From Styela clava (Eukaryota), in NCBI RefSeq assembly GCF_964204865.1, contig NC_135250.1, forward strand, positions 10,292,001 through 10,356,000: 64,000 nt of DNA, in the 5' to 3' direction. Both the position numbers and the translations under genes were made by a program. Each line of letters starts with the position of its first letter. The stretch's first letter is position 1. The notes under the pieces were generated by a model. That model saw only the letters and a program-made list of their open reading frames with translations. It searched no databases and was not told where the DNA came from. Below, one piece after another: positions 1 to 33,700 of the stretch.

Positions 1-3000
1 CCCAAATAATAAATTCACTAACTAAAGATCACCGGTTTTCGTTTTAGGATTATTATCTAAGCGTTTACGCCTATTTTTCCAAGAATATCAAGTTAATCCA
101 CCGGCAAATTAACGAACTTGAAACTGACTCCGAGATTCGGTACTGACAGGGTCGAATGTTACATTTTTATTAGGTTAATGCGTGTCATTACAAAAGTAAA
201 CAATAACATTTTGCGGTTAGATGAAGTCATCTTACGACTAGATACGGAACGCCTGGAATTTAAATAAAAATATATGAAAATGAATTCATAAAATAACTAT
301 TTTGTTAACGAATTTCAAATTTACACGACTAATCTTCTGGGAACTATGTTCCCACATTCGATTGGAATGCTTTGCTGAAAGAACGAATATGTACCAAAGT
401 TCTTTTGACCAAATGCCGTGAACTATTAACACACTTTTTCGAAGTCGTCGTTAATTAAAATTTGTTGAGTATCATTTTAAATTTATTGGTCCGTCCTTTA
501 TTCCAGATAGGTGAGATGATAATATTTTTTAAATACGAAGTATTTGTATGTAGTACTAAAAGTACTACAGTAAAAACTACAATTTGGCAATACCTTACCG
601 TGACGGATAAACTGCTCTGTAAAGATAGGTCCTATTCAACCGAGTCTGTGCCATTATCTGAATGTGACGTGAGATTGTAGACAGAAACACAGAATTGAAC
701 AATACCGCAATATAATTAGCACAAAATACAAAATAAACATTTTTCTATAACTAGTTTTTTATTAAAAAAAAAAATTTATATGATAGCTTATACTTCTCAA
801 AAACCTGATAAATCAGCCTAAAATATATAACGTGAAATCGGTATAAGTTATAAAACCGAAAAAAAACTATTTTTAAAGGCATTGATTTAGGTAGGCATTG
901 TTTGGATGTTGATACGCCCGAGACTAACATTTTTGACAAAAAATAGAATGTGCTAATAAATTTATGCCTACGTAGTAACATTTGAAAGCAATAACAATTT
1001 TGCTAGAAATAAAGAGTTGGATAAAAAAAGCATTTCTTTGAGAGCTTTCTCAAAAATAGAATACATGTATCATCATTACTGAATTTGATGATGAAAGCTA
1101 TCCTATTGAATTTTATTTTTAAAATTAGCACTAATAACTTTATTATACTTTTCATAATTCAGAAATATGTGTATGCATTCAGAAAATATCATTTTGCGGA
1201 TTAAGGTTAATGCTGTATACGTTTGCATAAAATTTCAAGTATTTGAATGTTCCATTTTGAAAGTCAAACAACCTTTCTCTTTATTTTATTTAATGACCCC
1301 TAACAAAGTACTGAGTGTTGTTGGGGAGGGATGAGACATTGAGTATGTCTCATTGGAACAAATGTAACCTAATTCCAGTTTATCGTGATTTTTCATAAGT
1401 CACTGATCGCGCTTCTGTGACACAGTCCGCCGAACTGCAAATGTTCGACTGTATATGAATATGAGAACATTTTTTACTGCTGTACATTAGTATACTATAA
1501 TGTGGTAATGTTTAATAATGATCTAAATTATCACAACATAAATATATACATATGTGAAAATCTTCGCCTCCTTCAACACTCCTACTTGTTTATTAATTTT
1601 AATTCAAAATTAGGAAGTGTAAACTTCACATTGAGTACATCAACAATTCAAGCAACAGTCCTTCAAGACATTGACAGTCTGATACAATTTTCCCAATTTG
1701 TAAATCGTGGACTAAATTTGAATAACGAGTAAAAACGTTCAAGTCAAAATCATTAAGTAATTTTAAAAGTGGAAGTGTTTAATTGTATCCGATAATTAGT
1801 TTGTATATTTTAGTTGTGAAACCATAGACCTGGAAATCAAAATATTGGGAATTCACCATAATATATGTTTGGAAAAATTGTAAAATAACGTAACTTAACA
1901 ACTAAATAAGATAGATTTTTTGAAGTTTACATTCCTTAAAAATAATATGAAGAAATGTAGATTATCTCTACATTATTTGCAGCATTTTTTTTGTGTCGAG
2001 ATCATTTCCTATCCTAGTGAGATTAAATTGCCAAACAAATTGTGAGCCTGATTTTAAAATAAAGCTACCGTTTTTATTGTATATTTCTTCATTTAGTTTA
2101 TTGGCCAGTAAACAATCCAATGTGAAAAATCCCACCATGGGCGTGATACCGTAATTGGAATTGCCGCGATACACGTATGAATGATTTTGATGTAATTTAA
2201 TAAAAAACGTTATAACAAATTCTTATCAGTAAAATGTCATATCTTACTACCTCAAAGAATATGAAAATGCCTACCGGATATCAATGACGCTATCGGAACT
2301 ATACGCCTTTTATTTTCTTTATTAATAGAACGATCCATTTTTAGATATTGCATATATCACAAAATAATAATTATAATAATAAAATATAATGTATGTAAAT
2401 GTATTCCGGGAATCAAACAGCAACCGGACAATCGGATCTTGTGAACTGGCTATTGGCCAAGAAAGCGGTGATTATTATATTTGAACAATTTATCTGACAT
2501 CATAAAATTATTTTGTGTATGAAACTATATTATATTGCTCTATAACATGGACACAAAGTGGACCTATAGATTGTCTTGTCAAATTGTTGTTAGTATTTCT
2601 TTTCTTGTTGTTGTGAAATATCGACTTTCTCTTCAAATTCTGGACTAAGTTGGAATTAATTTTGTGAAAGATTTATTGTTAAATGGCTATTACTTTTATT
2701 CATTCCTAATTTTTCTCTGAATCCTATGAGATCTGATATTTTATTCAAAATTTTACTGTTTTATTATTATATATATGAATACCGTTTTTATTCCGCCGAA
2801 CGTGACACCTGCGTCAAATCTGTCCTCCGTTTTGATTTTGCACTGCACCGTTTTGATTTTGCATTTTCGTATGAGTTGCCTAGGCTACCGGCACTGCGGC
2901 TGTTCATTAGACTTCCGTGTCCATGTTTCTTGTTCAATGAATATAATTTTACTTTTGAGTCATCTCAACATTGATGTACCGTGTTTTGAATATATTACCC

Positions 3001-6000
3001 TAATCTATTAATAATTAGAAAAAACATAATCAAATAAACAAAATATTTAATATGCATTCACAGCTGTTTTATGACATCATAATATGATAATATCAATGAA
3101 CGGAGAAACGCAACGATTATAAATAATTTAAAATTACATAGCTAGTCCAAATAAGGGAACGGAAGCAATATCATGTCCAGAATCATATTATATTGAAACA
3201 TAGTCAAGTTTTACACTACTTCCGCTTATCAACGTGACGTGACAAATCAAATTACGTCACAATTACAGGGTTTGAACATCGGGGATGATAAACGCTAAGT
3301 TGGATATTGCAAATGTGATGTAACAATGCATTCCCATATATGGTATGATGTCAGTATGTGTATTTACATGCTTCATAAAAATATATTGAAATTGTGTACC
3401 AGAACAGTTGTTTACTTTTGAAAGTGAAAAGTGGATTCACTTTCTTCCGTGATAAGGGTCATTCGTCGAACTGGAAGTATGTAGTCTAAAACAGAATTTA
3501 GTTATTAGATTACGTCATCTTTTTGTCTTCTAATTTTATCTTCTTCTATAATGTATAATGTTTTTCTTTTGCTGCATATGTGCCATGTATTTAAAATAAA
3601 AACCAAGACATCTGCATTGTTGCAACGAAAAATGAGACAAAAAAAATCGTGCATTGTACCGATAGCGTCTCCCTTGTTTTATGTTATTTTTCCGCAACGT
3701 GATTCTTTTATTACTAATGAATCAGCATGCCTTAAAATCGTGAATAAATAACGACTGCAAAACAGACTGATTAAGCTTTCAACTCGGATTAAAACGTTAT
3801 GGTATGTCTAAAAACAATGGCCAATGTAATAAGCTGTTGTTTTTATTAGAAGATAACATCCCCAGCTGGGCCAGCCTACATGAGAAAATATCTACATGTA
3901 TCGGAAACGCGTTTTAAATGCATTTCAATGAGAAAAGATTACATGGAAACTTTTAAACATACTTTCACGGGCCCACAATTTTCTTGTTCTAATGTTGCAA
4001 ATATTTAATAAAATTTGAAAATATATTAATAAAAAGTGTTTTGATAGATTTGTTACTACAAGCACTGTCTGTGTTGTTTTTTCTGAGTTTACTTACATAT
4101 CCATTTTTAAATATAGATTCAGTATTGTTGGTGGCCCAAAAAAAAAGGGCTCATACGAGTACTTAGTCTATTATTTAAAAACAATTTTTCTTTTTATTTG
4201 CAAAAACAAATCTCCGGAAATTGTCAGTCCAGTTTATTAAAGAAGTCTGAACGTTTCGACTTGATAGATATCACATAATTTATTATATTCTTCTTCGAGT
4301 TGCAAACCGAAAATTTCAAACACGTTACGCGAATAATCGCTGCTTCATCATTAAATTCAGATCTTTTAGCTTTCATGCACTCGTCATAATTTGCATATTT
4401 GTTTATTATTTTGAAGACATGGATTGTACTTTTTCGACGATCTTTTTTTGATCGGCCAAAATTTGACCAAAAGACGTCACCATTTGCTATTGTGCCATCA
4501 AGTTTGATAACATCTACAGCACAGATGTATGAGGTGATTTTTCAGACACAGAGTCTAATTATCAATCGACATTGTATTGTACCACCCAGCACCTCGAAGC
4601 ACAAGCAAACAAACCATACATCATTACTTAATATTGTCAAAGAATAAATAGTAGATAAAATTCCCACGCATCGACAAAAATACTGACAAACAATTATGAA
4701 TATTAATGTCGTTTTAAGCCAATTTCTCCCATCTTAAGGTAATTATCTTTTGTTTTTGTACAGATTAAAACACGATTTCATAGGGTTGATCCGTTGTGTC
4801 AACATGTAAAAGTATAAAGTTTTATTTCTGGACTGGTCAAATGAAAAGATTGCAATCTTGTAGCAAATAAATGCCCATTAGGTATCACTGACACGCGAGA
4901 AAACCGGAATAGATGAGTGTGTTCAGTGGAAGAAATGAGCGAAAACAACATTTCAAAATATAAGCGAAATCATAGTGTAATACACTATTCTGAGTCCAAA
5001 TATTGCCATTGAAGAGCTTCATCATAAAATCGAATCTGATAATTCAACTACTGCAGTGATTCAATTTGTATTCGTGATATATACATAAATCATATAAAAT
5101 AAAATAAATTAATATATTACACACAAATAACAAAGACTCGCACATAAAACATCCTTGTAAATCTATGAGGTTCTACGATACGTTCTATAAACGGCACTTT
5201 TAAAAAACAGAAAAAATGATTATCGTGAGTGAAAAAGCGGTTTTATCGTAAATATTGGAATAAATTTTGCAGACGCTGAGTTATATTGCTGATTATCAAT
5301 GCCTGCCAAATGATATTTGACTAGACATGATCGAATCAAGTACATCACTCAATTTCGAACACTGAAACAACCAACATCATTTGTGGGTATCGGTATTTGC
5401 TAGCATCCGTCAAAATGTCAAAAATCTACTTAAATATTCAGTGTTTTAGTTCGACTTTTTGTTTGGACCAATTACATTTTTAGTTTTGTTTTTATTAAAT
5501 GTAATCTGTGATTGATTACATTTATAACGGAAACTGTAGTTGTAACAAATGTCAAAGTCTGGAATAGTTTCGATAATGAATATCCATTGCAATCTTAAAT
5601 ATCAAAAACTTGTATTGTCTGAGAAAGTGTGCCAAACTGCGCCAAAACAGGTCACCCAATACTCAATCTCATTGTTTTATTTTCTGTTCCCATTCTTCCT
5701 GAAACTGCCAGTTTTATTATTTGAACAGTAGATTAAATAACTGCAGCGGTGGACCTGGTTGTGCTCCATTCATAAACTTGTGATGGTTTGTCAGTAGTAA
5801 AATAATAATAATGATGTTGCTGATGCCTTGCTATTCATTTGATCAATTTGTGTAAAGCAAACGACTCAAATGATACTGTTTCACTGCAGCAAAATTATAA
5901 TGATTTAATGACCTTAAATTGTTCCATCATTGACTGAAATATTTTTTTTGACAGGACAATGGGAATCGAATGGGCAATTGAATTTTAACCATTGACTAAA

Positions 6001-14225: not shown

Positions 14226-17200
14226 ATGAACGCACTATCGTTCACATACGTGCTACTGATCTCATGTTTTATCGTCGTTTGCAACGCAAGTGTGCTTTCG
14301 GTAAGTTCAAATCGAGATTTTTGAATTGTGATCAAAATAAAAAACTTTGTAAAATTGTGGCATCAACGTTTTTTTCTGATAATGTGTGAAAAAGGGTGAA
14401 AATTTGTACTAAGGCGGATCTCTGTTTATTTCAGTATGACGTCGTTGTATCCGAACTGTCTGATGATAAAGAAATTAATAAAGTTGAACAGGAAATTTAT
14501 ATTGATGAAGTTTATATGCTGACGACTACGCCTCCAGTAATCGAAATGGTGTACGAAGAAGATTTAGAAAAAGAGAATTCATTTAATGTAAGTATGCACG
14601 TGTGAGTGTAATACTCGGTCAAATCCTGTGAACAGTTTTAGCAAATTTTTTGAGTTTTCATCTTTTCCATCTATATAATTTCAAATAATTCCCAATTTCA
14701 GGAAACCGAATTCGTCGGGAGGTCAAACTATAATCTCACCGCAGAAGAATTTGAATTAGCTTTTGGAAAAGAAGGACATTTTCCAGAGGAACATATGAAT
14801 TTCGACTTAGGTTTCGGCGCTGGTCTCGTAAACTCCAAAGATTGGAGCAGTTGGACTTGTTGTCGTCCTGTCCTCAATATCCGATCACGTGAGCGAGTTC
14901 GACAAGTGCCAAGAATCGAAATGGAATACAAGAAATGTAGCGATGGTTACTGCAAACGTAAGCATAATATATCATTAATACTTATGAAAAACTGGTAATC
15001 TTTCGTGTATAATTTACGTGTCTTATTGATTAGCTCAGACGTCGGTGTGCCGGATTTAGACTAGCGTGAATATTAACTATTTTCGATACCGGTTTTGTTA
15101 ATGCACCGATTCTGATAAATTATAATTATAGTCGATCACTTTTGACACCAATTAAACAAAATTACAGCCATCGTTTCAAGTTTTCTTTTTTTAATTTTAA
15201 TACAGCGCACATGTGCAAGGATAATGTAAATGTTTGTGAAGCATTTATAAAATCTATGGGACAAGGATTGTGCGACAAAAATCATATGATGTCGACGTGA
15301 GTATTTTATTTCGCCGATTTCCAGTTTTTTAAATGTGAACCTTTGATGGTTTTTAACCCTTTTTTATTTCTAATTCTAGGTTTATGGGACATCATTGCCC
15401 TCTGACTTGTAACTTCTGCGGTGGAAGTGGTGAGAAGCCCACCGAGCCACCACGTCCAACTCTTCCACCTTGGATGCAAAATCCATGGAGACCGAGAACG
15501 ACAAAAGCAGAAAGACCAATTTTTACCACACCGAGACCGCGTATCACAACAACCAAGCGTCCATCTCGCCCGTGGTGGATGACCGAAAGACCAACTACAA
15601 CCAGACGTCCGTATTACACCACTAGACGCCCGAGAATCACACAAAAGCCATGGTGGGAAAGACAAACAACTACCACGACTCCTAAACCATTTGGTAAGTT
15701 GCATATCAATAGCTCAAATTAAGAACTGCCCTCTTTCATGTTTATAATATATTTCTGTTATTTAATTTTTCAGTTTCTGGATCTTCCGGTCTGGTAAAAG
15801 TTTCCATTTTCACCCACGACTTAAACGAGCCATATCCATCCTACATGTATTCGATTAGCTCAGGTGCTTATCCTTCAAGACCCTGGACAAATGTCATACA
15901 AGGAAATTCTGAGATATCACACTTTTACCTCTACAAAAAGTAATTATTTATTTTGATTAATTTAAAAATTTAACATGAAATTTGAAATATATATATTAAC
16001 AAGCTGATTCTGTTTTACAGACCCACTGATACATACAAGACGGCAGTCAAATTTTGCTCAAGCAAAGACTCGACTGGTAACAGAAAATGGGCTGTAACAA
16101 AAAGACGATGCTCTCGAGGTAAGGTTCAAATAATATTTTTTATCACAAAATATAAATCGTTAAAATGCTACTGTACTAAAGAATACTAAAAGTATTTAAT
16201 CAATAGTTTAATGAATTATGTAATAATTTTAGGTTGGAAGCAAGAATTTGTTTTATACGGTTCTCTTTTCCGATCATCTGAGTCTCAACTATACTACGTC
16301 GGAAACAGGGGAAGACCACATTGGACATCTCGCGTATCTAAGAAATTCCCCTCAAATGGTTATACGTCATCAGTCTTCTACTTCTATGGACCAAGTAAGA
16401 TCATAGTTTATTTACATAAAGTTTCGTAAAATAATTATAAAAAAGAATTTATTTGCTCAGTTGGTTAGCAAAAACTAAAATCAGTGTTGCTATGTTTTGC
16501 AGAAAGTACAGACAATGGACCAACTTTTCCATCAAGGCCTACACCAAGACCGTTCAGCACTCGTCGTCCTATCTATACTAGACCATATACCACTTCACGA
16601 AGACCAGTTTATACTCGTCCATATACCACTTCACGAAGACCGATTTATACTCGTCCATATACCACTACAACCAGAAGACCATACCGACCCCAACCCACTT
16701 TCCCATCTTTTACAACAACAAGACGAACCTCTCGACCAATTGGTGGTGGACCTCAGCCAACAGACGCATACAACAGAGAGTGCTTAGAAGCCCACAACTT
16801 TTTCCGAGCAGCACACAATGTACCTGCTCTTCAATGGTCCTCAGAACTTGCAAGGACTGCTCAAAGATGGGCAGATCAATTGAAGCAACGAGCACCAGAG
16901 CGACCAGACCAAGCCAGGATGGGTGATCGTACCCGCAACTGGCCCCACTCTGAGGTGAGAAAATTAGTTTTATGAGATCGTTCAATAACAACATATATAT
17001 AAATGATATAATATTGCATTGACTAGGATAATATTTTTATTTAACATTATTTTTGCATTTACAGTCCGACCAAAGGGGAACCTACAGAAAAGCAGGTGAT
17101 GGTGAAAATATCGCATGGGATCGTTCTGGAGATGGTAGCCCCGCCAAAGAATCTGTTCTTAGATGGTACAGTGAAATATTCTATTACAACCGAAACCATC

Positions 17201-17889
17201 CAACACACTCTCCAGCTCCAGACAAGCCAGTCGGTACGTCTCATTTCATTTTAACACTCAATTGTGCATACAACTGAGTAGTAAATTGTTTAATAATATA
17301 TACATGAAATAAGTAAATCAAATTAAAACTGGTCTTATTGTATTTCAGGACATTTGACACAGCTCTTGTGGAAAGACACAACGCATTTAGGATGTGCTAT
17401 GGCTACCACCAAAATTGGAAGATACAACCAACTATCAACATGGTCTGTTGCCCATTACAGAAAAGGTGGTAATATGCGATATTCAAACAGCATGTCAGCA
17501 ACATTGAGACTCTACAATGAACAAGTTCCCGATATGAGAGCAGGTTCATGCATGACGAGATCTGGAGCATGTAACAACGGAAATCAATGTATGGCTTTCG
17601 GACCGGCTCAAGGAAGCTGTGCTTGCACAAAGTAAATATCTCTTATTACTTTAACAAAAAATATAAAAACAAAGAAGACGTTTTTTTAGTATTAGAACTT
17701 TTACTAAAAAACTTAATGACGATAACTAACAATATTTTACTTCTTTACAGTCAACTAGCTTCGTGTCGCAGCAACAATGGTTGTATAGCTTGGTGCAAGA
17801 ACAGAGGTGGAAATTGGAATTGGTCTGAAGAATGCCGAGGCGCAAATAAATGCTCGTGTACGTCAGACAGAGGAGCAGTCTGTACTTGA
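14226..17889 (+). CDS. Secreted multidomain CAP/SCP (GAPR-1/PR-1/CRISP superfamily) protein, about 785 aa: signal peptide, acidic region, TSP1-like segment, ShKT domain, Thr/Pro/Arg-rich linkers, three-repeat domain, CAP domain, 12-Cys C-terminus
   Basis: 12 exons, all GT-AG and phase-compatible: 14226-14300, 14435-14587, 14702-14957, 15206-15296, 15380-15693, 15774-15939, 16021-16118, 16233-16394, 16503-16954, 17065-17233, 17349-17631, 17751-17889 (2358 nt). Signal peptide MNALSFTYVLLISCFIVVCNA. TSP1-like WSSWTCC..RSRER..EYKKC. ShKT CKDNVNVC...LC...HCPLTCNFC. CAP motifs AHNFFRAAH..LQWSSELA..AQRWA, WPHS, GENIAW, WYSE, GHLTQLLW..LGCA. AATAAA at 18142-18147. Confidence 0.92.
16562..16669 (+). 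repeat. Three 36-bp coding tandem repeats (RRP[I/V]YTRPYTT[S/T]) in exon 9 of the CAP gene
   Basis: Units at 16562-16597, 16598-16633 and 16634-16669, seen in both DNA and translation. Confidence 0.9.
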
Positions 17890-24025: not shown

Positions 24026-25030
24026 ATTTGCGATATATGTTGGGATTCCACACAAAAATTTTAATTCCGGTCAAACTACTTGGGGCAGACGAGAGGAGAT
24101 TCGAACATTTTACTTTACACCAACGGCATATTACAGTCTATCACAATTGAACATTTTTGTACCAACGGCATTAAAAGCGTTTTAACGAATCGAGGTCAAG
24201 ATAATACTCGATCTTTGTGCCGTTTCCTCTCCCCTGGAATAAATATGTATATCCTATCCTATATATATATTAAAACACAATAAATACATAATAATGCCTT
24301 ATGCGACGAATATGCCAAATTCTCTCAATAGCCTTATTAAAGATCAGAGGAGGGAAAGCCTCAAATATCACGTAGTATAATAACATTTGGTCATTGTAAT
24401 CATTGCTTTACAATTCCTCTCAGAAGAAGAATTTATATTATCTCGAATAAAAGATAAAGAGGCAGTGTCTACGGCTCTACGCGAACTCTTGCTTTTGACG
24501 CGGACGTCAGTCTTACTTGGAAAACCTGGATGTTCGCCAGAGAAACCCATATTCTCGACCAGCTCAGAAAAATAATTGGCTCAATTTTTCATTTTCAGCA
24601 ACCCACTTCGAAACAAAAACACAGATCTTACTAAAAAAGTCAACGATTGAACAATTCCACCATCTGTTGAAGTATTATTATTGACTCCAAATTGATGTAA
24701 AAAATTAATATTATTTACAACTATCAGTGTATTGAAAAAAGTAAGATGCAACTTCAATGAGACAAAGTAATAAATTGAGTAGAACATAATAAATCTGACT
24801 GTAACTGTCTTTTTCAAGCTGCGTGATTCCTCGTCTGCGTAGAGTTTTGTTCTGTTGTTATTTTAAAGTTGCTCTTTTCTACTAATAGACAGATATTGCT
24901 AGGTATATGAATTATTTTACAGCAATGAACTTGATAAAATCACTGTTAATATATATACAAAGTCATTGAGTATTAATTCAGAGCGGTTCGATTGCGAGCG
25001 AGCGATTAATTCAGATGTTTGTTGGCCACT

Positions 25031-28000
25031 TCAGCCGCTCAAGTCGTAAGCTCGTTCAAAGCACATATTTCTGCAAGCCCAGCAGCGTTCCTCGAATCTT
25101 TTATCTGTAGGTAGCAAAAAAGGAAGTCAGGCAAAGAGGTAAGATACAGTAAAAATAAAGAATCGAATGAGGTATTCGTGATGTTTTGTTACAATAATGA
25201 AAAAAAATATAAATCTGTATTGTCAAAAAAGTCTCTACAATAATCATGGTGTATTTCTATGCCTATTTTGTCTTTTACTATTTCGTACAATCTAACAAAT
25301 GAAATATCAGAAGAGTATAAATATTCCAATATAAATGGTAATATATCAGTAAATTTTTGCTAAGCCAAAGTCTAACTTGTTAAAGATAAAATAGCAATAG
25401 CAATAATAATGCAAAATATGAATCTCCACATTATTAAACAAATTGACTTCATGTTCTAAATTATTCTTGTTATACCCATGCTGTACGTATGAGACATTGG
25501 ACTAGATCAGTATGGAAAGCCAGATTAAAAATATATTCTTAATAATGCACAGATTTATGAATTTGCGGTTTTAATCACCCTGGTAGCAAAACCTTATGAG
25601 CAGGGATGGCCATACCCATCGACTATCTTGAAAGTCCTAGTTTGGGAATTTCAAATATATCTCTTTTTTTTAAATAAAGTACAGTATATATATGATCTAA
25701 GCGATTGTCTACAATAATGCTTATTATTTTGCGGGGAGATAATTATGCTATTCTTGGTTATCAATCTAATACTGTCTTGTTCAGGTATCCTTGCGGTCCA
25801 GTAAAAGATAAAATGAAGTAGGGGTAACGATTTGCAGGTATTAAATGGTATTTCAAAACCCCATAGATATAGTAAAAATCTTTAAACAATTATAACTGAT
25901 TCTCCTTATTGTCCCATGGTGACGACGGAAGACAATGGGTCGGTATACTTACGTTTTTGAAGTGACTTGGAACTTCTCCAACAGCTAACAACAAAGTTGT
26001 CGCCTTTTTTCTCACAAAATCGTTTGCAGATTTTGGGATATCCTGATACCATGTTTCTGCTGCCTTTAGTCTAAAAAAGGATTTTTTTTTTCAGAAGTCT
26101 TAACCGCCGGTCACGGCATTCCCGTGCATTATTTTCAATAACAACTAGTATGTCAAGTGTTATGTTGATGTTTCAGCACAAGTTCACAAATTCCAGTGCT
26201 GTAAAAAAACAATTCCTGAATATAGTTCATGGTTTGAAACGCCCCAAAACCGCAATTTCCTTTTATCTAAGCATTGTTTTGAACCAAATATTCACCGACT
26301 TTGTAGATTATAGCAAAATTACAAAATGGATAAATTTTACAGAATGCGAGGGCTTTGTGTAAAATAGTATGTAACTTTGCCAGATTTTATCAAATTTTTG
26401 TCCTCTATATGTCAAAACAAATACGATTTTACTTTGTGGTTATTTAGAAAGCCCAAATTCACGGTTGGTCGACAAATCATAACAATACAGGTCACGCAAC
26501 TTAACTTGCAAATTGTAGAATAAATATTAATTTTCATTCTTGCGTTTTAGGCACTATGCATACCCGTAATTGATCGGTCGTAAACAACATTTCAAATTAA
26601 ATTATGGTATATACATTATTTTATCGTGAAATAAAGCAACCAGAGAATGATAAATTGGTATAGGCACTGTCGAATCAGAAATATTCCAGTTTCTAGAGAT
26701 TGTGACTCGTCACATAATATCAGCGATTGCTAGTGCGAGGGCTTGTTATGACCACTCAATTTGAATTTAGTATTTCGATCGTAGAGTGAATTTGAATGGT
26801 TATCGTACAAATTTGCTATTGTTGGTATACGCCAGGGGTCGGCAAACTTTCGTCGTTCGCGGGCCAAAAAATGGTTGCAAGTCATTGGCGGGCCGCACAT
26901 ATTTTTAGAAAGTTAAAAACCGAGGAAATGGCCAATGAATCACATTTTGTCACACCGATTTTAGTTTACAAGCAGCGCGCGAAGACTGATATTTGAATAT
27001 TTTTTGCGCCATTTACTCATTTGCACTCAGCATCAACTTTTTTACGTTATGTTGCCATTTGTCTAATTATAATCAATTTATAGGCTCATTAAACGAGTGA
27101 TTGTGAATTATATACTTGGTAGGTTATAATATAATTTAGTGTCTCAAAACGAATTCTGTTACGTAAAGAGTAAAAGAATATATTCGTCAATACAGTTGTT
27201 TTGTTAATATAATCCATGCGAAGCGTCGCGTGCCGGATTATATTGTTCCGCGGCCGGATCTAGCCCACGGGCCGCAGTTTGCCGACCCCTGGTATACGCT
27301 ATCATTTTAAATTGTCATATTGTCTCCCAGTAAGAGTAAACTTACCATCGCACGGGCATGCGGGTATCGCAATCTCCCCACTCTTCTAGATCCATTTCGC
27401 GAATATCCAAGAACGTCGATAGACATGGCCCCTATAAAAAAATTATTTTTATATTTTTATTTAAATATACAATAGTTCTTATATTTGTATCGGCATTGGT
27501 ATCTTTACCAAGCGCACAAAAGAGATGAATTGTCAATCAAAATAATCCATTAATCAACGTCAGATTTCATCTCGCCAAATTCTTGAACATGAATGCATTC
27601 TATTCACAGAAATATTGCAAAATTTTCAGCTCCACTACTTCACGCATCTTAGTGTTAATTATCTATCCAAATTTTAAACCCCCAACAAAAACGCTGGAGT
27701 TTATAAGTCGAGAAATTTGTACGTCTTAGGCATTTATTACGGCATATTTATTAGGCATAAGAATACAAAAAAAGCGGCCCTTCAAAACAAATTTGTTTTA
27801 AGTTTAGTCTATTTTCTGCGATAAGTTGAAAGTTCAATAGCCAGTAAAGTTGAAGTACTGAGTGCAGAGCTTTTATCAGTCAGTAAACTTATTGCTTTTA
27901 GCCTAATACCAGCTAGAATACCTGCTAGCCATTGTCCATTGAATTCTCGGGATAATGCTTATCTTTCAAAATGGACAATTTCAAACACTTTAAGAGCACT

Positions 28001-28614
28001 TGTGGGTGTAATGAAATGGTAATCTCACTTGACGATCGAATTACATCACACTGGACGTAAACACGCGCCTTTGAAGCATCATAACCTACCCAGCATGCAT
28101 CTTGTGGGCAAAAGTATTTCTGAATTCCATAGCTAATTGCAGTTTCCATTACCGGTGACCGTGCATTTGGACCCACGTACATTTGAACCCATACACCCGC
28201 CACTTGTAGAATACTTTACACTTGACTAAAAAATGTGGCTTTTCCTATAATAAAGCCGATTTTCTTTTGGTGAGAAATGAGGACAAATATTCCATTTTTA
28301 TCATCCATGTTGCCACAATCATATTGAGAGTGATCGGTCATAATGACTATGAGTAAAGTGTATTTAAAAACATATATTTCTAGAATGTTTAGTGATAAAT
28401 TTTGATTTTGATAACGCATTTCCGCCTAAGTTTGGAATATGGAGGGATTAATATGAATCGTTTTGAATGATTTTCTCCGTGTTAGGCTATCGGGTTGCCA
28501 TAACAATATCAAATTTGATTTTTATGATACCTCTAAACAAATTTTCATTACCAAGAATTTAACAACTTACTCACCGATAATAACAACGACAAAGACGATG
28601 CTTATTATTTTCAT
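25031..28614 (-). CDS. Small secreted cationic cysteine-rich peptide precursor, 105 aa, family unknown
   Basis: Exons 28614-28575, 27431-27346, 26070-25953 and 25104-25031 (40+86+118+74 = 318 nt). Donors GTGAGT/GTAAG/GTAAG, pyrimidine-rich AG acceptors, phases 1/0/1. Translation: MKIISIVFVVVIIGAMSIDVLGYSRNGSRRVGRLRYPHARAMTKGSRNMVSGYPKICKRFCEKKGDNFVVSCWRSSKSLQKHKRFEERCWACRNMCFERAYDLSG*. Confidence 0.78.
26833..27291. mobile_element. hAT-type MITE in intron 2 of the peptide gene
   Basis: Perfect TIR CAGGGGTCGGCAAACT; perfect TSD GTATACGC (26825-26832 and 27292-27299); GGCCCG/CGGGCC subterminal motifs. Confidence 0.92.
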
Positions 28615-29844
28615 TGTGTAATTTCTTTTCTACTCAATTCCAAAGACTTCAACAAGATTAATCAATAGTAAAATATATCTTAAAATATAAATGGAATATT
28701 TAATTGTAAATGTTAAAACAATATTTCATAAACAGCTACACGAGCGTTTGTTTTAATGTTTCTATATTTTGTCTAAACAAAGACTTGTGTTGTAAATTTC
28801 AGAAAACAATTCAGAAAAGTTTGCAGATCAAAATTCACATTCCAAAATACATGTATATAGTTTCTGCGGTGAGACGCTAGAAAATTAATATGAAAGTTAA
28901 AATGGGTGCCAAGCATAATTATTGGCGTAACATATTTTCCTCAAAAGCTTACGTACCCGAAATAGAAACGTGATCGAATTTATTATATAAAATATATAAT
29001 ATAATAAAATGCAAAAAAAAAAATTTTCTAATTTTGCTAAAAAAAATTTCAATTGATTATTTTATAATATTCTATTCGAAAAATTATTTTGTCGACGTTA
29101 TTCACGTTTTTCACTCCGAACAGGAAAGACCCTCTGCATGCACCCACTGAATATATTGGTTCTTCGGTATTTGTTAATGACAGTTTTCAGGTGATTCAGT
29201 ATCGTTATGCGATATGATGATTTATGGCATAGCAACAAAAAATGCTTATCGCTGAATCCGGACAAAAGTAACAAGATACTTTTCTCGGTAGCTAAACGAT
29301 TACAATTGTACCAAAACAAGAGGTGAAAGAATTCCACAACATCATGACATTTTCTAAAGAGTTTATATCGTATTATTTTTTCGTTTCGCAGCATTTTTAA
29401 AAATCAGAAGTTTTTAAATCTACAATATTTTTACCATCAACGTGATTTAATGATATCAAATTCCGCAAAATGTGCGTGAATTCTGACACAAACGGCTAAT
29501 TTCATTAATGAAAGAATAACTTTTCGATTATTCTAAACGTTTATTTTTTTTTTAATCAAACTTTTACGCTCTTTAATTCAAGATATCAAAATTTCTAATA
29601 CAGGGAAAACCAATAAATTCATTGATTTTATTCGAAAACTGCTTTTACACTTAAAACTCGGTTTGTGTGTGGTTGTATTCAAAGGTTTCTGTAATCTGGG
29701 ACTTCAATGAAAGAATAACTCTCTAAATATTCTGAACATTTTTTTTGATTTAAACTTTTACGCTCAATAATTCAAAAACTTTATTACACGCAGACTAAAA
29801 AACAGGTTTCTGGGACACTTTGCACAAAGTCATGTTCTCTGGAA

Positions 29845-30748: not shown

Positions 30749-33700
30749 CTCTAGAAGATGTTCTAAATGACATGGGTTTTGTCTTTTTTAGCTCACATTG
30801 TACAGATATATTTATATCGCTTGTGCTATTGGAAAATTCTTAAATCATTTTGAATCTATTTTGTTCTCTCTGTGAAGTTCCTAAAAAGATAAAATCGTAG
30901 CCGTTGTTGTATGTGATCTACATGTCACCGTGTTATACGAAAACTTAAATCTAAACTTTCACTTACACATTTAGTTCAGTGGTGATTAGCGTTTCTATTG
31001 CCACTGAATGTGGATACCAAATTACGTCAGCACCGCTGAATCTTATCTTGCAATTCGTCTGAGCTACGATGCTACCATCTGACGACGCGCTTGTGTCTGC
31101 GCTCTCCTTTCGGGTATTTTCTGAGTTTAAGTAATCGGCTGTTAACGAATTCAGCCTTCATCCCGCAGGAGAAAATAGTAACGCACGCGAAAAACAAACT
31201 TCGTTGGGGTAATATAATTTGTTTGTAAAGATGAACAAAGGTAACAATCGACGAACTTGTTTGTCATAAAAATGAGAGAATACATACGGAATTCCGGTAC
31301 TTTCATGTGCGCTTCGAAACGTAATTCAGCTTTATGTTAGAAAAAAGAATATATCTCATTGTCTCATATTTATAAATTTAATATTTGTTACCCTCACGCT
31401 GTGAATCCCAAAACAACAACTCGACATTGAGCGAGACCGACAGATGGCCAATACAACGTTACGTCCCAAATAAGATAAGGTAGATTTTAACAGTACTGTG
31501 ACCATATTCTTGTAAAAGTGATTTGCCAAGTTGTTCCGGTATGCGCTAGCTAGACAATACGCCTTCGACTACAACGTCAGTCGGTGTTTATCTGTTTACT
31601 CTTTGGTGGTTTGATATCGGCAACCAGCAACGACCACGCAAAGTTACTGTAAATGATTATTTAAAAAATACTGTTCGTTTCTCGACGCCTCAATGACTAC
31701 TTTTATCGTAGAGGACCCGTTTGATTTACAAAGAACTCGTCGATGTAGGTTTTTAAATGTTCTGAAAAGCGTTTGTTTTAGCTCTAGGAAAGCACTATAA
31801 AAAAAATCTTGTGTGTGCATTTTCATTGTGCTAGCATATTCCAAGGGTTACCAGTAAACAAATCCAATACCCAGAACACTGTAAATGTCATATTTACAAA
31901 ATGATAAAATTACTGATTACTATTCAAACACTTGCGTTCATTTTCATAGACCGAATACCAATAATTTCGAGCAGTCTCTATGAGAAAAGTTTATTTATCA
32001 ACATACTTAGGTGAAATTTGTTACTTGCTGGCTGCCACAATCTTCAATGGCATGTTGACATAGCCCACTCAACTTGCGCAGTAGATCACTTAACAATTCT
32101 ACAATTTTTGGCAGTCACGGATTTTAAGTAAAAAAGCTTTTTTTTGTTGTTTTTTGTTTTTCCAATTGGATTACTATATTACTATATCAATTTCCGAACA
32201 GATGTCCGCAAAAATTAAACTAGAAGTTATTCAAAGGAAATCCTCTTTTTGATACTTTTTCTTCGTTTTTGTTTGTTTACAACATATATATATATATATA
32301 TATACATGTCATTGCATATCAAATGATCGGCTCATTTCTAAAAAACATAGCAATTTCAAAGAAAGCCAGTTGTCGGATGAAGAAACCTTTGTTTTTAACT
32401 AAAATAATACTTCATAATGAACTCGTTAGAAACGTTCTCAAACTAGGATACAAAATAACTGTTTACATTGTGTGACAGGAACACGCGACATTCTTTCTAA
32501 TCTACGATCGATATTCTATAATACCGTTAGATACCAGAATTATGTCCGATTTTCGACAATATTAAACTTGATTGACAGTATTATATTAGTTCAATTTTTC
32601 AAAGTCGGTAATGGGTGGGCGACTAATTTCACAAATGTGGGCATTGATTTCCGTTCAGAATAAATGATTTTTTTTTAGATGTTTCTTGCTTTCTTGACTG
32701 GATAACTTCGTGAAGATGGTTTTGTTCCGTGAAGCATAGTCTATTTATGACTTAGTTGATTGATTTAAACTTGGCAGTGGGCGATTACAAAATATAATGA
32801 TAATATACGTTCAGCATAAATAAATATCTAAATAATAATTTATCCTCTGTTTGCGTCATCCTGGTCTGTAAAACAAAAACTAGCTATAAAACTCGACCAT
32901 AAAACTATCAGTTACACTTTGAACTATTTAACTTGCTATTCAATCAGATAAAAAATTGATTTATGAGAATAATAGATAACAGTTTCTAAACTTTTACCGG
33001 TCAAATAATAAAAATGCTTTTAATGCGAAATACAGCAACGCAAGTCAATTCTTAAACATCTTCCCTATTGATATGCTAAACCTTTTTCAATCGTAAACAT
33101 TTTTGAAGAGCCTATAAACTGCAAATTGCCACCTTCTCGTAAAACTTTGTCCCGGTGTCCCGGTAAGTCGACCATAAATCGTGTTTTTAGTGATTCATAA
33201 TTGTAGTTCATTATGTGTGAACTGTTCTTAAATGTGAAAGTCAAACAAGTTTTAAAACAATTGGGTCCTCATTCATTTCAGCTCCATAGTCTTTCAATTT
33301 CATGCGCGTGGGCAGTGCTATTGTCAAAACAAATTACTTCACGCTAAGAACGTGACTGGTACAATGTTGAGAAGGATTTGAGATTAGGATCAAAATATTT
33401 GCCAAAATTGAGCTCTGTCAAACACATACGAAGAGTCTATACTATCAACGAAGCAACAACATAAGATAAACAGCGAAAGCCGGGACAATAATCTAAACTT
33501 ACTTAAAAAGATAATCCAAGGAAATTGATGATTGGCAAATTGGCAAAAATTTCATATAGATATTTCGTGATGGATTCCAAAAAATATAAAAAAAACGGGT
33601 TCTCTTTAATATCGAACAGACTATCAACATGTACCCTTTTTTCAAAAAACGTGCCGAAAATAGATTGAATACAAAAATTTCGAAAGTCGAATATAACGCT

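Follow-up and report, generated by a model that had tools for sequence, protein, structure and literature searches.

The 64,000-nt stretch of the Styela clava genome analysed here (RefSeq assembly GCF_964204865.1, contig NC_135250.1, positions 10,292,001 to 10,356,000 of the forward strand; hereafter the window, with positions counted from its first letter) raises the question of whether four short minus-strand exons between positions 28614 and 25031 form a gene, as a sequence-only reading had proposed, and what the cationic six-cysteine peptide that they would encode might do. We find that the predicted gene is a real, transcribed and spliced gene of Styela clava. Its product may be a processed, possibly amidated extracellular signalling peptide (hormone-, neuropeptide- or cytokine-like), a reading drawn from sequence features that we favour tentatively and with less than even confidence.

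Structure and transcription of the window gene

All four coding segments (Table 1) translate in frame on direct reading, as had been predicted, and each of the three introns begins with GTGAGT or GTAAGT and ends with AG. The coding part of the first of these exons (28614-28575) encodes MKIISIVFVVVII and ends one base into a Gly codon, and an in-frame TAG lies 18 nt 5' of the ATG at 28614. No open reading frame (ORF) of at least 60 aa in the ORF listing covers any of the four coding exons, and a prokaryote-style ORF list therefore misses the gene, in agreement with the earlier remark that it was absent from the ORF track. It was not, however, hidden from public annotation: RefSeq already holds it as XP_039271481, 'uncharacterized protein', so that it is an unnamed gene missing only from that track.

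Nine transcriptome-size sequencing runs from the same organism, originating in three studies, were available, and contigs from four of them (X1, X2, X3 and X9) were aligned to positions 24700-28800. The runs carried the label 'RNA?' by guess; exon-only contigs with the introns exactly removed are the pattern of spliced RNA. Contigs from three studies cross the predicted junctions 28575/27431, 27346/26070 and 25953/25104, which prove correct to the base. Their joints fall at 25104/25953, 26070/27346 and 27431/28575 (the last also given as 27430(+1)/28574), and the pieces skipped at all three read CT..AC on the plus strand, that is, GT..AG on the strand of the gene. The joint 25104/25953 is exact in X2 and X9 only, the contigs of X1 and X3 being broken at that point. 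Two contigs, record 7 of X2 (880 nt) and record 20 of X9 (1080 nt), each cover all four exons together with untranslated regions (UTRs), and contigs of the 3'UTR extend past 24700 (by some 345 nt more in X9). Word depth is about 40-200 in exon bins and about 0-9 in intron bins outside two multi-copy repeats.

The transcript also carries non-coding leader exons that lie further upstream, are used alternatively and are joined to the acceptor at 28679/28678; each has a canonical donor (Table 1). In X1 record 3 the 50 nt that hang loose at 28678 match 30967-30996 with one mismatch, and the loose end of X3 record 17 (at 28679) is an exact match to 31398-31427; this second leader exon continues upstream, with about 286 nt of contig unplaced. 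The count of four exons given by the sequence-only reading therefore holds for the coding exons and falls short for the transcript, which adds at least one non-coding leader exon. Since a TAG lies upstream of the ATG, the leader exons leave the protein unchanged, and their alternative use suggests regulated promoters.

Spliced-leader trans-splicing at the 28679 acceptor was considered and rejected: the extra 5' letters of X1 and X3 map to upstream exons of the window, and those of X9 belong to a dispersed repeat with 438 copies, and are therefore not a spliced leader. The X2 contig continues unspliced beyond 28800, so a third, proximal start may exist.

Table 1. Coordinates of the window gene, its paralog and other features of the window (CDS, coding sequence; positions are those of the window unless a contig is named)
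Feature	Position	Strand	Remarks
Leader exon B	31398..31427	-	alternative, non-coding; 3' end; donor GTGAGG at 31397
Leader exon A	30967..31016	-	alternative, non-coding; 3' end; donor GTAAGT at 30966
First coding exon	28575..28678	-	acceptor AG 28680-28679; 5'UTR 28678-28615; joint in 4/4 runs
CDS of first coding exon	28614-28575	-	40 nt, phase 1; start of predicted signal peptide
Coding exon 2	27346..27431	-	86 nt; end of predicted signal peptide, then Arg-rich pro-region
Coding exon 3	25953..26070	-	118 nt, phase 0 to phase 1; C57, C61, C72
Exon 4, coding part	25031..25104	-	C89, C92, C96, then YDLSG; TGA stop 25033-25031
3'UTR, minimum extent	24700..25030	-	X2 record 7, X9 record 20, X3 record 13
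Paralog LOC120333232 (L004/L005)	G000:C17:19325481-19328677	+	own-genome search, locus reading
MITE-like repeat	26832..27292		intron 2; 461 bp; perfect 17-nt terminal inverted repeats CCAGGGGTCGGCAAACT
Neighbouring secreted gene	15384-17889	+	Pro/Thr/Arg-rich repeats (RPxYTRPYTTS..), CAP/SCP-like ORF, Cys-rich C-terminal pieces

The predicted precursor

A profile built from the exon-3 translations of the window gene and its paralog was searched against a library of 1.84 billion protein representatives, in which a 39-residue profile needs about 35 bits for significance. It recovered P0001 (105 aa, E 3e-21) and P0002 (107 aa, E 3e-20), whose clusters are named 'uncharacterized protein LOC120345940' and 'uncharacterized protein LOC120333232' of Styela clava. 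The RefSeq protein P0004 (XP_039271481.2, LOC120345940, 105 aa) is identical to the product of the window gene; in P0001, an allele, the pro-region carries V31L. P0002 (XP_039256532, LOC120333232) is identical to the paralog deduced from the genome. The RefSeq models of both genes are annotation only, with no name, domain, family or function attached, and a literature search on locus and accession names found no paper citing LOC120345940 or LOC120333232 in the library covered.

Both paralogs have the marks of a signal peptide, namely an initial MK, 13-17 hydrophobic residues and small residues at -1/-3 (..VLG/Y in the window protein, ..GKA/E in the paralog), which bears out the earlier prediction; an AlphaFold2 model places a helix at residues 4-21. 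Cleavage of the window protein is likely to follow ..DVLG, and from these sequence features we infer that the product enters the secretory pathway. The precursor is cationic, with an Arg-rich pro-region, as described; its net charge after the signal peptide is about +15 (about +13 in the paralog), and the isoelectric point is 9.9-10.3. A recount upheld the cysteine spacing C-x3-C-x10-C-x16-C-x2-C-x3-C (3/10/16/2/3), which includes a conserved motif CW(A/T)C reminiscent of redox CxxC sites.

The 105-aa secretory precursor would thus comprise three parts. A signal peptide some 22 aa long would be followed by a pro-region of roughly 20-30 aa, disordered and Arg-rich, in which di- and multibasic sites of convertase type occur. 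The last part would be a cationic helical domain of about 50 aa that carries the six cysteines and ends in YDLSG-stop. In exon 2 of the window gene the pro-region has RR and RxxR/RLR sites. Both precursors end in YDLSG-stop, which makes the C-terminal Gly a candidate amide donor, the residue used by peptidylglycine alpha-amidating monooxygenase.

An ancient paralog and a constrained C-terminus

When exon 4 was searched against the genome of origin, a frame with 65% identity was found on another contig, and reading of that locus gave a paralog of the same structure. The coding segments measure 40, 86, 118 and 74 nt in the window gene and 40, 92, 118 and 74 nt in the paralog, with phases 1, 0, 1 common to both; the cysteine spacing is 3/10/16/2/3 in each, and all six cysteines stand in register. 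The two genes are single-copy and unlinked, on different chromosomes and with no tandem array. Whole-genome profile searches with exon 3 or exon 4 returned no significant locus beyond these two. The window gene and LOC120333232 thus appear, as far as sequence comparison can tell, to be a small two-gene family without detectable relatives. The paralog's first coding exon, too, has an AG acceptor in front of it, about 30 nt upstream of the ATG.

Nei-Gojobori counts were made per exon and then summed. For exons 3 and 4 of the paralog pair the proportion of synonymous differences (pS) is 0.83, which is saturated, and that of nonsynonymous differences (pN) is 0.32; for exon 4 alone the values are 0.95 and 0.18. 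A saturated pS together with this lower pN indicates that the duplication is ancient and that the cysteine domain has been kept. Identity between the paralogs rises along the protein: it is almost nil in the pro-region, 33% over exon 3 and 65% over exon 4, and constraint is strongest in the C-terminal tail, whose last residue is Gly. Such rising N- to C-terminal conservation would favour the pattern of a prohormone over that of the fast-evolving mature regions of antimicrobial peptides (AMPs) or toxins.

Allelic differences follow a similar course. None occurs in exon 3 or in the coding sequence of exon 4 in 4/4 runs, and exon 2 is the only coding exon with any (V31L, and 2-3 other letters in X3 and X9). 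The segment 24701-25084 has up to 9 differences per 384 nt, all within the 3'UTR, and intron 3 has 10-13 per roughly 500-700 nt. This pattern backs constraint on exons 3 and 4 in a supportive way only, the haplotypes being few and non-independent. Two allelic forms of the paralog (P0002 and P0005) differ by K61N and A71V, inside the cysteine domain.

Among the sub-threshold hits of the own-genome profile searches, L006 and L014 were rejected as lacking the cysteine framework. L002/L013 and L015 were also set aside: they keep part of the exon-3 motif and are decayed or have no exon-4 partner. The exon-3-like frames read ..YPGEMSYFCETRGKSFAVAC.. in L015 (G000:C8:2303147-2303209, minus strand) and ..GYGKFCKEFCEKENNSAHV.. 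in L002/L013 (G000:C1:24607956-24608027, minus strand), each with one cysteine missing and stops nearby; neither is paired with an exon 4. Both may be remnants of the two-gene family in decay, or chance.

Predicted fold

AlphaFold2 was run on the two-sequence alignment, and its confidence is modest. For the window protein the mean predicted local distance difference test score (pLDDT) is 55, with 63-75 in the cysteine domain and less than 50 at residues 16-49, in keeping with a disordered basic pro-region. Beyond the signal helix (4-21) the model has a helix at 54-67 (C57, C61), a loop with C72 and a helix at 79-104 (C89, C92, C96). The paralog model scores higher (mean pLDDT 62, 76-84 in the cysteine domain), with helices at 37-54, 56-64, 67-74 and 81-100. 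The predicted helices are hydrophilic, and their amphipathicity does not exceed that of shuffled sequences (hydrophobic moment 0.03-0.41).

On a helical wheel C89, C92 and C96 lie with F85 and L103 within 220-280 degrees. Since the three cysteines share one helix face, they could be turned towards the first helix, the one with C57 and C61, and a nested arrangement C57-C96, C61-C92, C72-C89 is our guess from the model. Of the disulfide-stapled helices put forward by the sequence-only reading, the helices find support in both models of the cysteine domain, and the stapling would depend on a pairing that we infer.

Searches with Foldseek and VIA-align against the PDB, made with both models, gave only generic helical pieces (best E 2.3, best Z 4.5). 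C5a-desArg was listed in the fold search at a non-significant E of 5-7.

A cysteine framework without a described family

Pfam searches with the exon pieces and the whole proteins returned no relevant family, and cysteine-rich families including ShK and defensin gave no match at E<=10; DUF7191 (E 0.2) and Sar8.2 (E 0.073) are unrelated families far below the cut-off. Queries with P0001 and with the two-sequence alignment against a word index of 5.8 billion proteins retrieved nothing beyond the S. clava pair, and neither paralog had a usable feature match in the ESM Atlas. Relatives outside S. clava were absent from the protein searches, whose animal reach is limited and which included no tblastn against other tunicate genomes. 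The earlier statement that the framework is not a recognised one agrees with all of these results: Pfam, PDB sequences, protein libraries, the ESM Atlas, Foldseek and VIA-align yielded no significant match. Within the reach of the searches run, then, the two-gene family looks like an orphan in both sequence and framework; it is a new cysteine framework inside the familiar class of small secreted disulfide-rich peptides.

Two local likenesses deserve mention. The third match of the exon-3 profile was a WSC/kringle protein (P0003), aligned at profile positions 13-27 in each of 5 repeats (summed E 2e-4). This protein of 629 aa has five near-identical WSC-like repeats and a kringle, and its helix KC(K/R)(Q/R)FCGKKG(F/Y)KFAG is locally like the first Cx3C helix of the two-gene family. 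The WSC domain has about 80 aa and 8 cysteines; homology to it was rejected, the likeness covering 15 residues per repeat with the cysteine register not kept and with no Pfam WSC match for P0001 or P0002. The PDB sequence search gave only the second EGF domain of factors IX and X (E 0.27-1.3, about 34 residues). This match was rejected on two grounds: the alignment breaks the cysteine register, and the window peptide's domain is predicted to be helical, not beta. EGF-like domains have six cysteines with C-x-C at the C4-C5 position; C1 and C4 of EGF have no counterpart, and there is no Pfam EGF match.

The helical peptide hormones were compared in the same way. Insulin has the spacing C-x11-C...CC-x3-C-x8-C, CHH the spacing C-x15-C-x2-C-x12-C-x3-C-x8-C, and eclosion hormone the spacing C-x3-C-x2-C-x12-C-x3-C-x10-C, all of which differ from the 3/10/16/2/3 of the window peptide. 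Insulin/relaxin was rejected further for the want of a Pfam match, of an adjacent CC pair and of any place among the PDB sequence or fold matches, and CHH/ITP/MIH and eclosion hormone gave neither a Pfam nor a fold match. In general plan, with a signal peptide, three disulfides, a helical fold and basic sites, these families do resemble what is predicted for the window peptide; their mature length is about 60-75 aa, and CHH-type members are C-terminally amidated.

The plant alpha-hairpinins have the motif C-X3-C-X4-20-C-X3-C when four cysteines are present and C-X3-C-X3-C-X4-20-C-X3-C-X3-C when there are six (PMC11591084). They are likewise small and secreted, many are basic, and two Cx3C motifs on predicted helices with possible disulfide bracing recall the window peptide. 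Membership was rejected: the Cx3C motifs of the window peptide are 30 residues apart (4-20 in alpha-hairpinins) and its extra cysteines stand at x10 and x2, not x3. The window peptide differs further in its animal source, its non-amphipathic helices and the lack of any sequence relationship, so that the resemblance would be at most an architectural analogy.

Signalling peptide or defence peptide?

The reading that we tentatively favour, a signalling peptide, would work as follows. The precursor would enter the secretory pathway, where three disulfides would lock a compact helical fold; cleavage at basic sites would take off the pro-region, and the terminal Gly would give rise to a C-terminal amide; held out by the rigid core, the conserved tail could then be recognised by a specific receptor or other partner. 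The combination of non-amphipathic helices with a constrained tail ending in Gly is what leads us to prefer this reading to a membrane-active AMP. The best-conserved element appears to be the non-cationic C-terminal tail, which would favour a specific ligand, and the single-copy, unlinked genes with alternative leader exons favour the same choice.

Several points weigh against a signalling peptide. The paralogs do not keep their basic cleavage sites in matching places: RR and RLR lie in exon 2 of the window gene, and the paralog has KR where its exon 3 begins. The high charge (about +15 and about +13) and the lineage restriction also fit defence peptides. Contig depth, which is not rankable, looks fairly high for a neuropeptide; the structure models, made from a two-sequence alignment, have modest confidence; and a C-terminal Gly is necessary, not sufficient, for amidation.

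A stronger form of the signalling reading, in which the two genes are founders of an undescribed tunicate peptide-hormone or cytokine family, is possible and in our view doubtful. The ligand would have about 60-75 residues, be helical with three disulfides and C-terminally amidated, and act on a receptor; its cysteine framework would be one not seen in the insulin, CHH or eclosion-hormone families.

The best surviving competitor, which we consider unlikely without dismissing it, is a host-defence AMP: a cationic, disulfide-stabilised helical peptide from haemocytes or epithelia that kills or binds microbes, with an architecture analogous to that of alpha-hairpinins or saposin-like peptides. 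Small size, a signal peptide, the charge of about +15 and +13 and the isoelectric point of 9.9-10.3 all suit it, as do a family that is lineage-restricted as far as the searches reach and a good representation in whole-run transcriptomes. The known AMPs of S. clava, namely clavanins, clavaspirin and styelins, are linear and amphipathic and not known to contain cysteine, and several are C-terminally amidated. They share with the window peptide their source and their cationic character, and are secreted or granule-stored; the window peptide differs in having six cysteines and in not being amphipathic, and the sequence-only reading saw no likeness to styelin or clavanin. In a review (PMC10817596) clavanins are alpha-helical peptides rich in histidine, styelins are cationic AMPs, and S. 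clava is portrayed as rich in peptide-based immunity through both, which speaks for a defence role; the ascidian AMPs named in the passages of PMC10817596 considered here are linear or single-disulfide, which speaks against it. So do the hydrophilic, non-amphipathic helices, the lack of tandem expansion, and the fact that the mature domain, above all its neutral-to-acidic C-terminal tail, is the part most conserved across a saturated duplication.

Toxin- or inhibitor-like and other extracellular roles, taken together, are somewhat less probable again. A part in building the tunic or matrix, a role at fertilisation or in the gamete coat, or metal or redox activity through CxxC seems improbable to us: the conserved CW(A/T)C is like redox CxxC sites and there is the weak local likeness to WSC and EGF helices, but that likeness is short and non-significant, keeps neither cysteine register and finds no echo in Pfam, and an enzyme fold would need a larger protein. 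Still less probable is an effector that blocks an ion channel or a protease as an anti-predator or anti-fouling defence. The pair of Cx3C motifs on predicted helices, together with the basic surface, does bring to mind the scorpion kappa-hefutoxins, the nemertean B-neurotoxins and the plant trypsin-inhibiting alpha-hairpinins; against this, no sequence or fold match to such families was obtained, ascidians have no venom apparatus, and the gene is single-copy and evolves slowly under constraint. That the four exons are a chance assembly of short open frames and not a gene is refuted, with next to no probability left to it, by spliced contigs from three studies at exactly the predicted junctions, by the RefSeq model and by a paralog of the same structure.

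An expressed two-gene family with a new six-cysteine, predicted helical framework and a strongly constrained C-terminus that may be amidated offers a candidate for antimicrobial tests or for the search for a receptor (deorphanisation), and the case shows how short multi-exon peptide genes are missed by ORF-based scans. Two things limit its impact: RefSeq already models the gene, and animal genomes hold many orphan secreted peptides.

Neighbouring gene and repeats

The secreted neighbouring gene, whose CAP-like ORF lies at 16484-16975 in the ORF listing, is convergent with the window gene and about 6.8 kb from its minimum mapped 3' end at 24700. The sequence-only reading had placed a convergent CAP gene about 7 kb away and suggested that it may be linked to defence; the location is right, and proximity is no evidence of a defence role.

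Two repeats lie in the introns. Over the element in intron 2, which is like a miniature inverted-repeat transposable element (MITE), RNA contig depth reaches 350-2400, indicating a multi-copy element with many expressed or co-transcribed copies. In intron 1, positions 28125-28261 show a word depth of 1000-3100 in the RNA contigs of 4/4 runs, with about 5 in the adjacent sequence, and are probably another multi-copy repeat.

A third repeat was met at the 5' end of the gene, where the transcript contig of one individual (X9) fuses it to the window gene. The 17-mer TGGAGTATTTGGTTGTA, taken from the X9 loose end at 28683, has 438 copies in the genome (control 0), and these often form same-strand pairs 5-6.5 kb apart, as the long terminal repeats of retroelements would.

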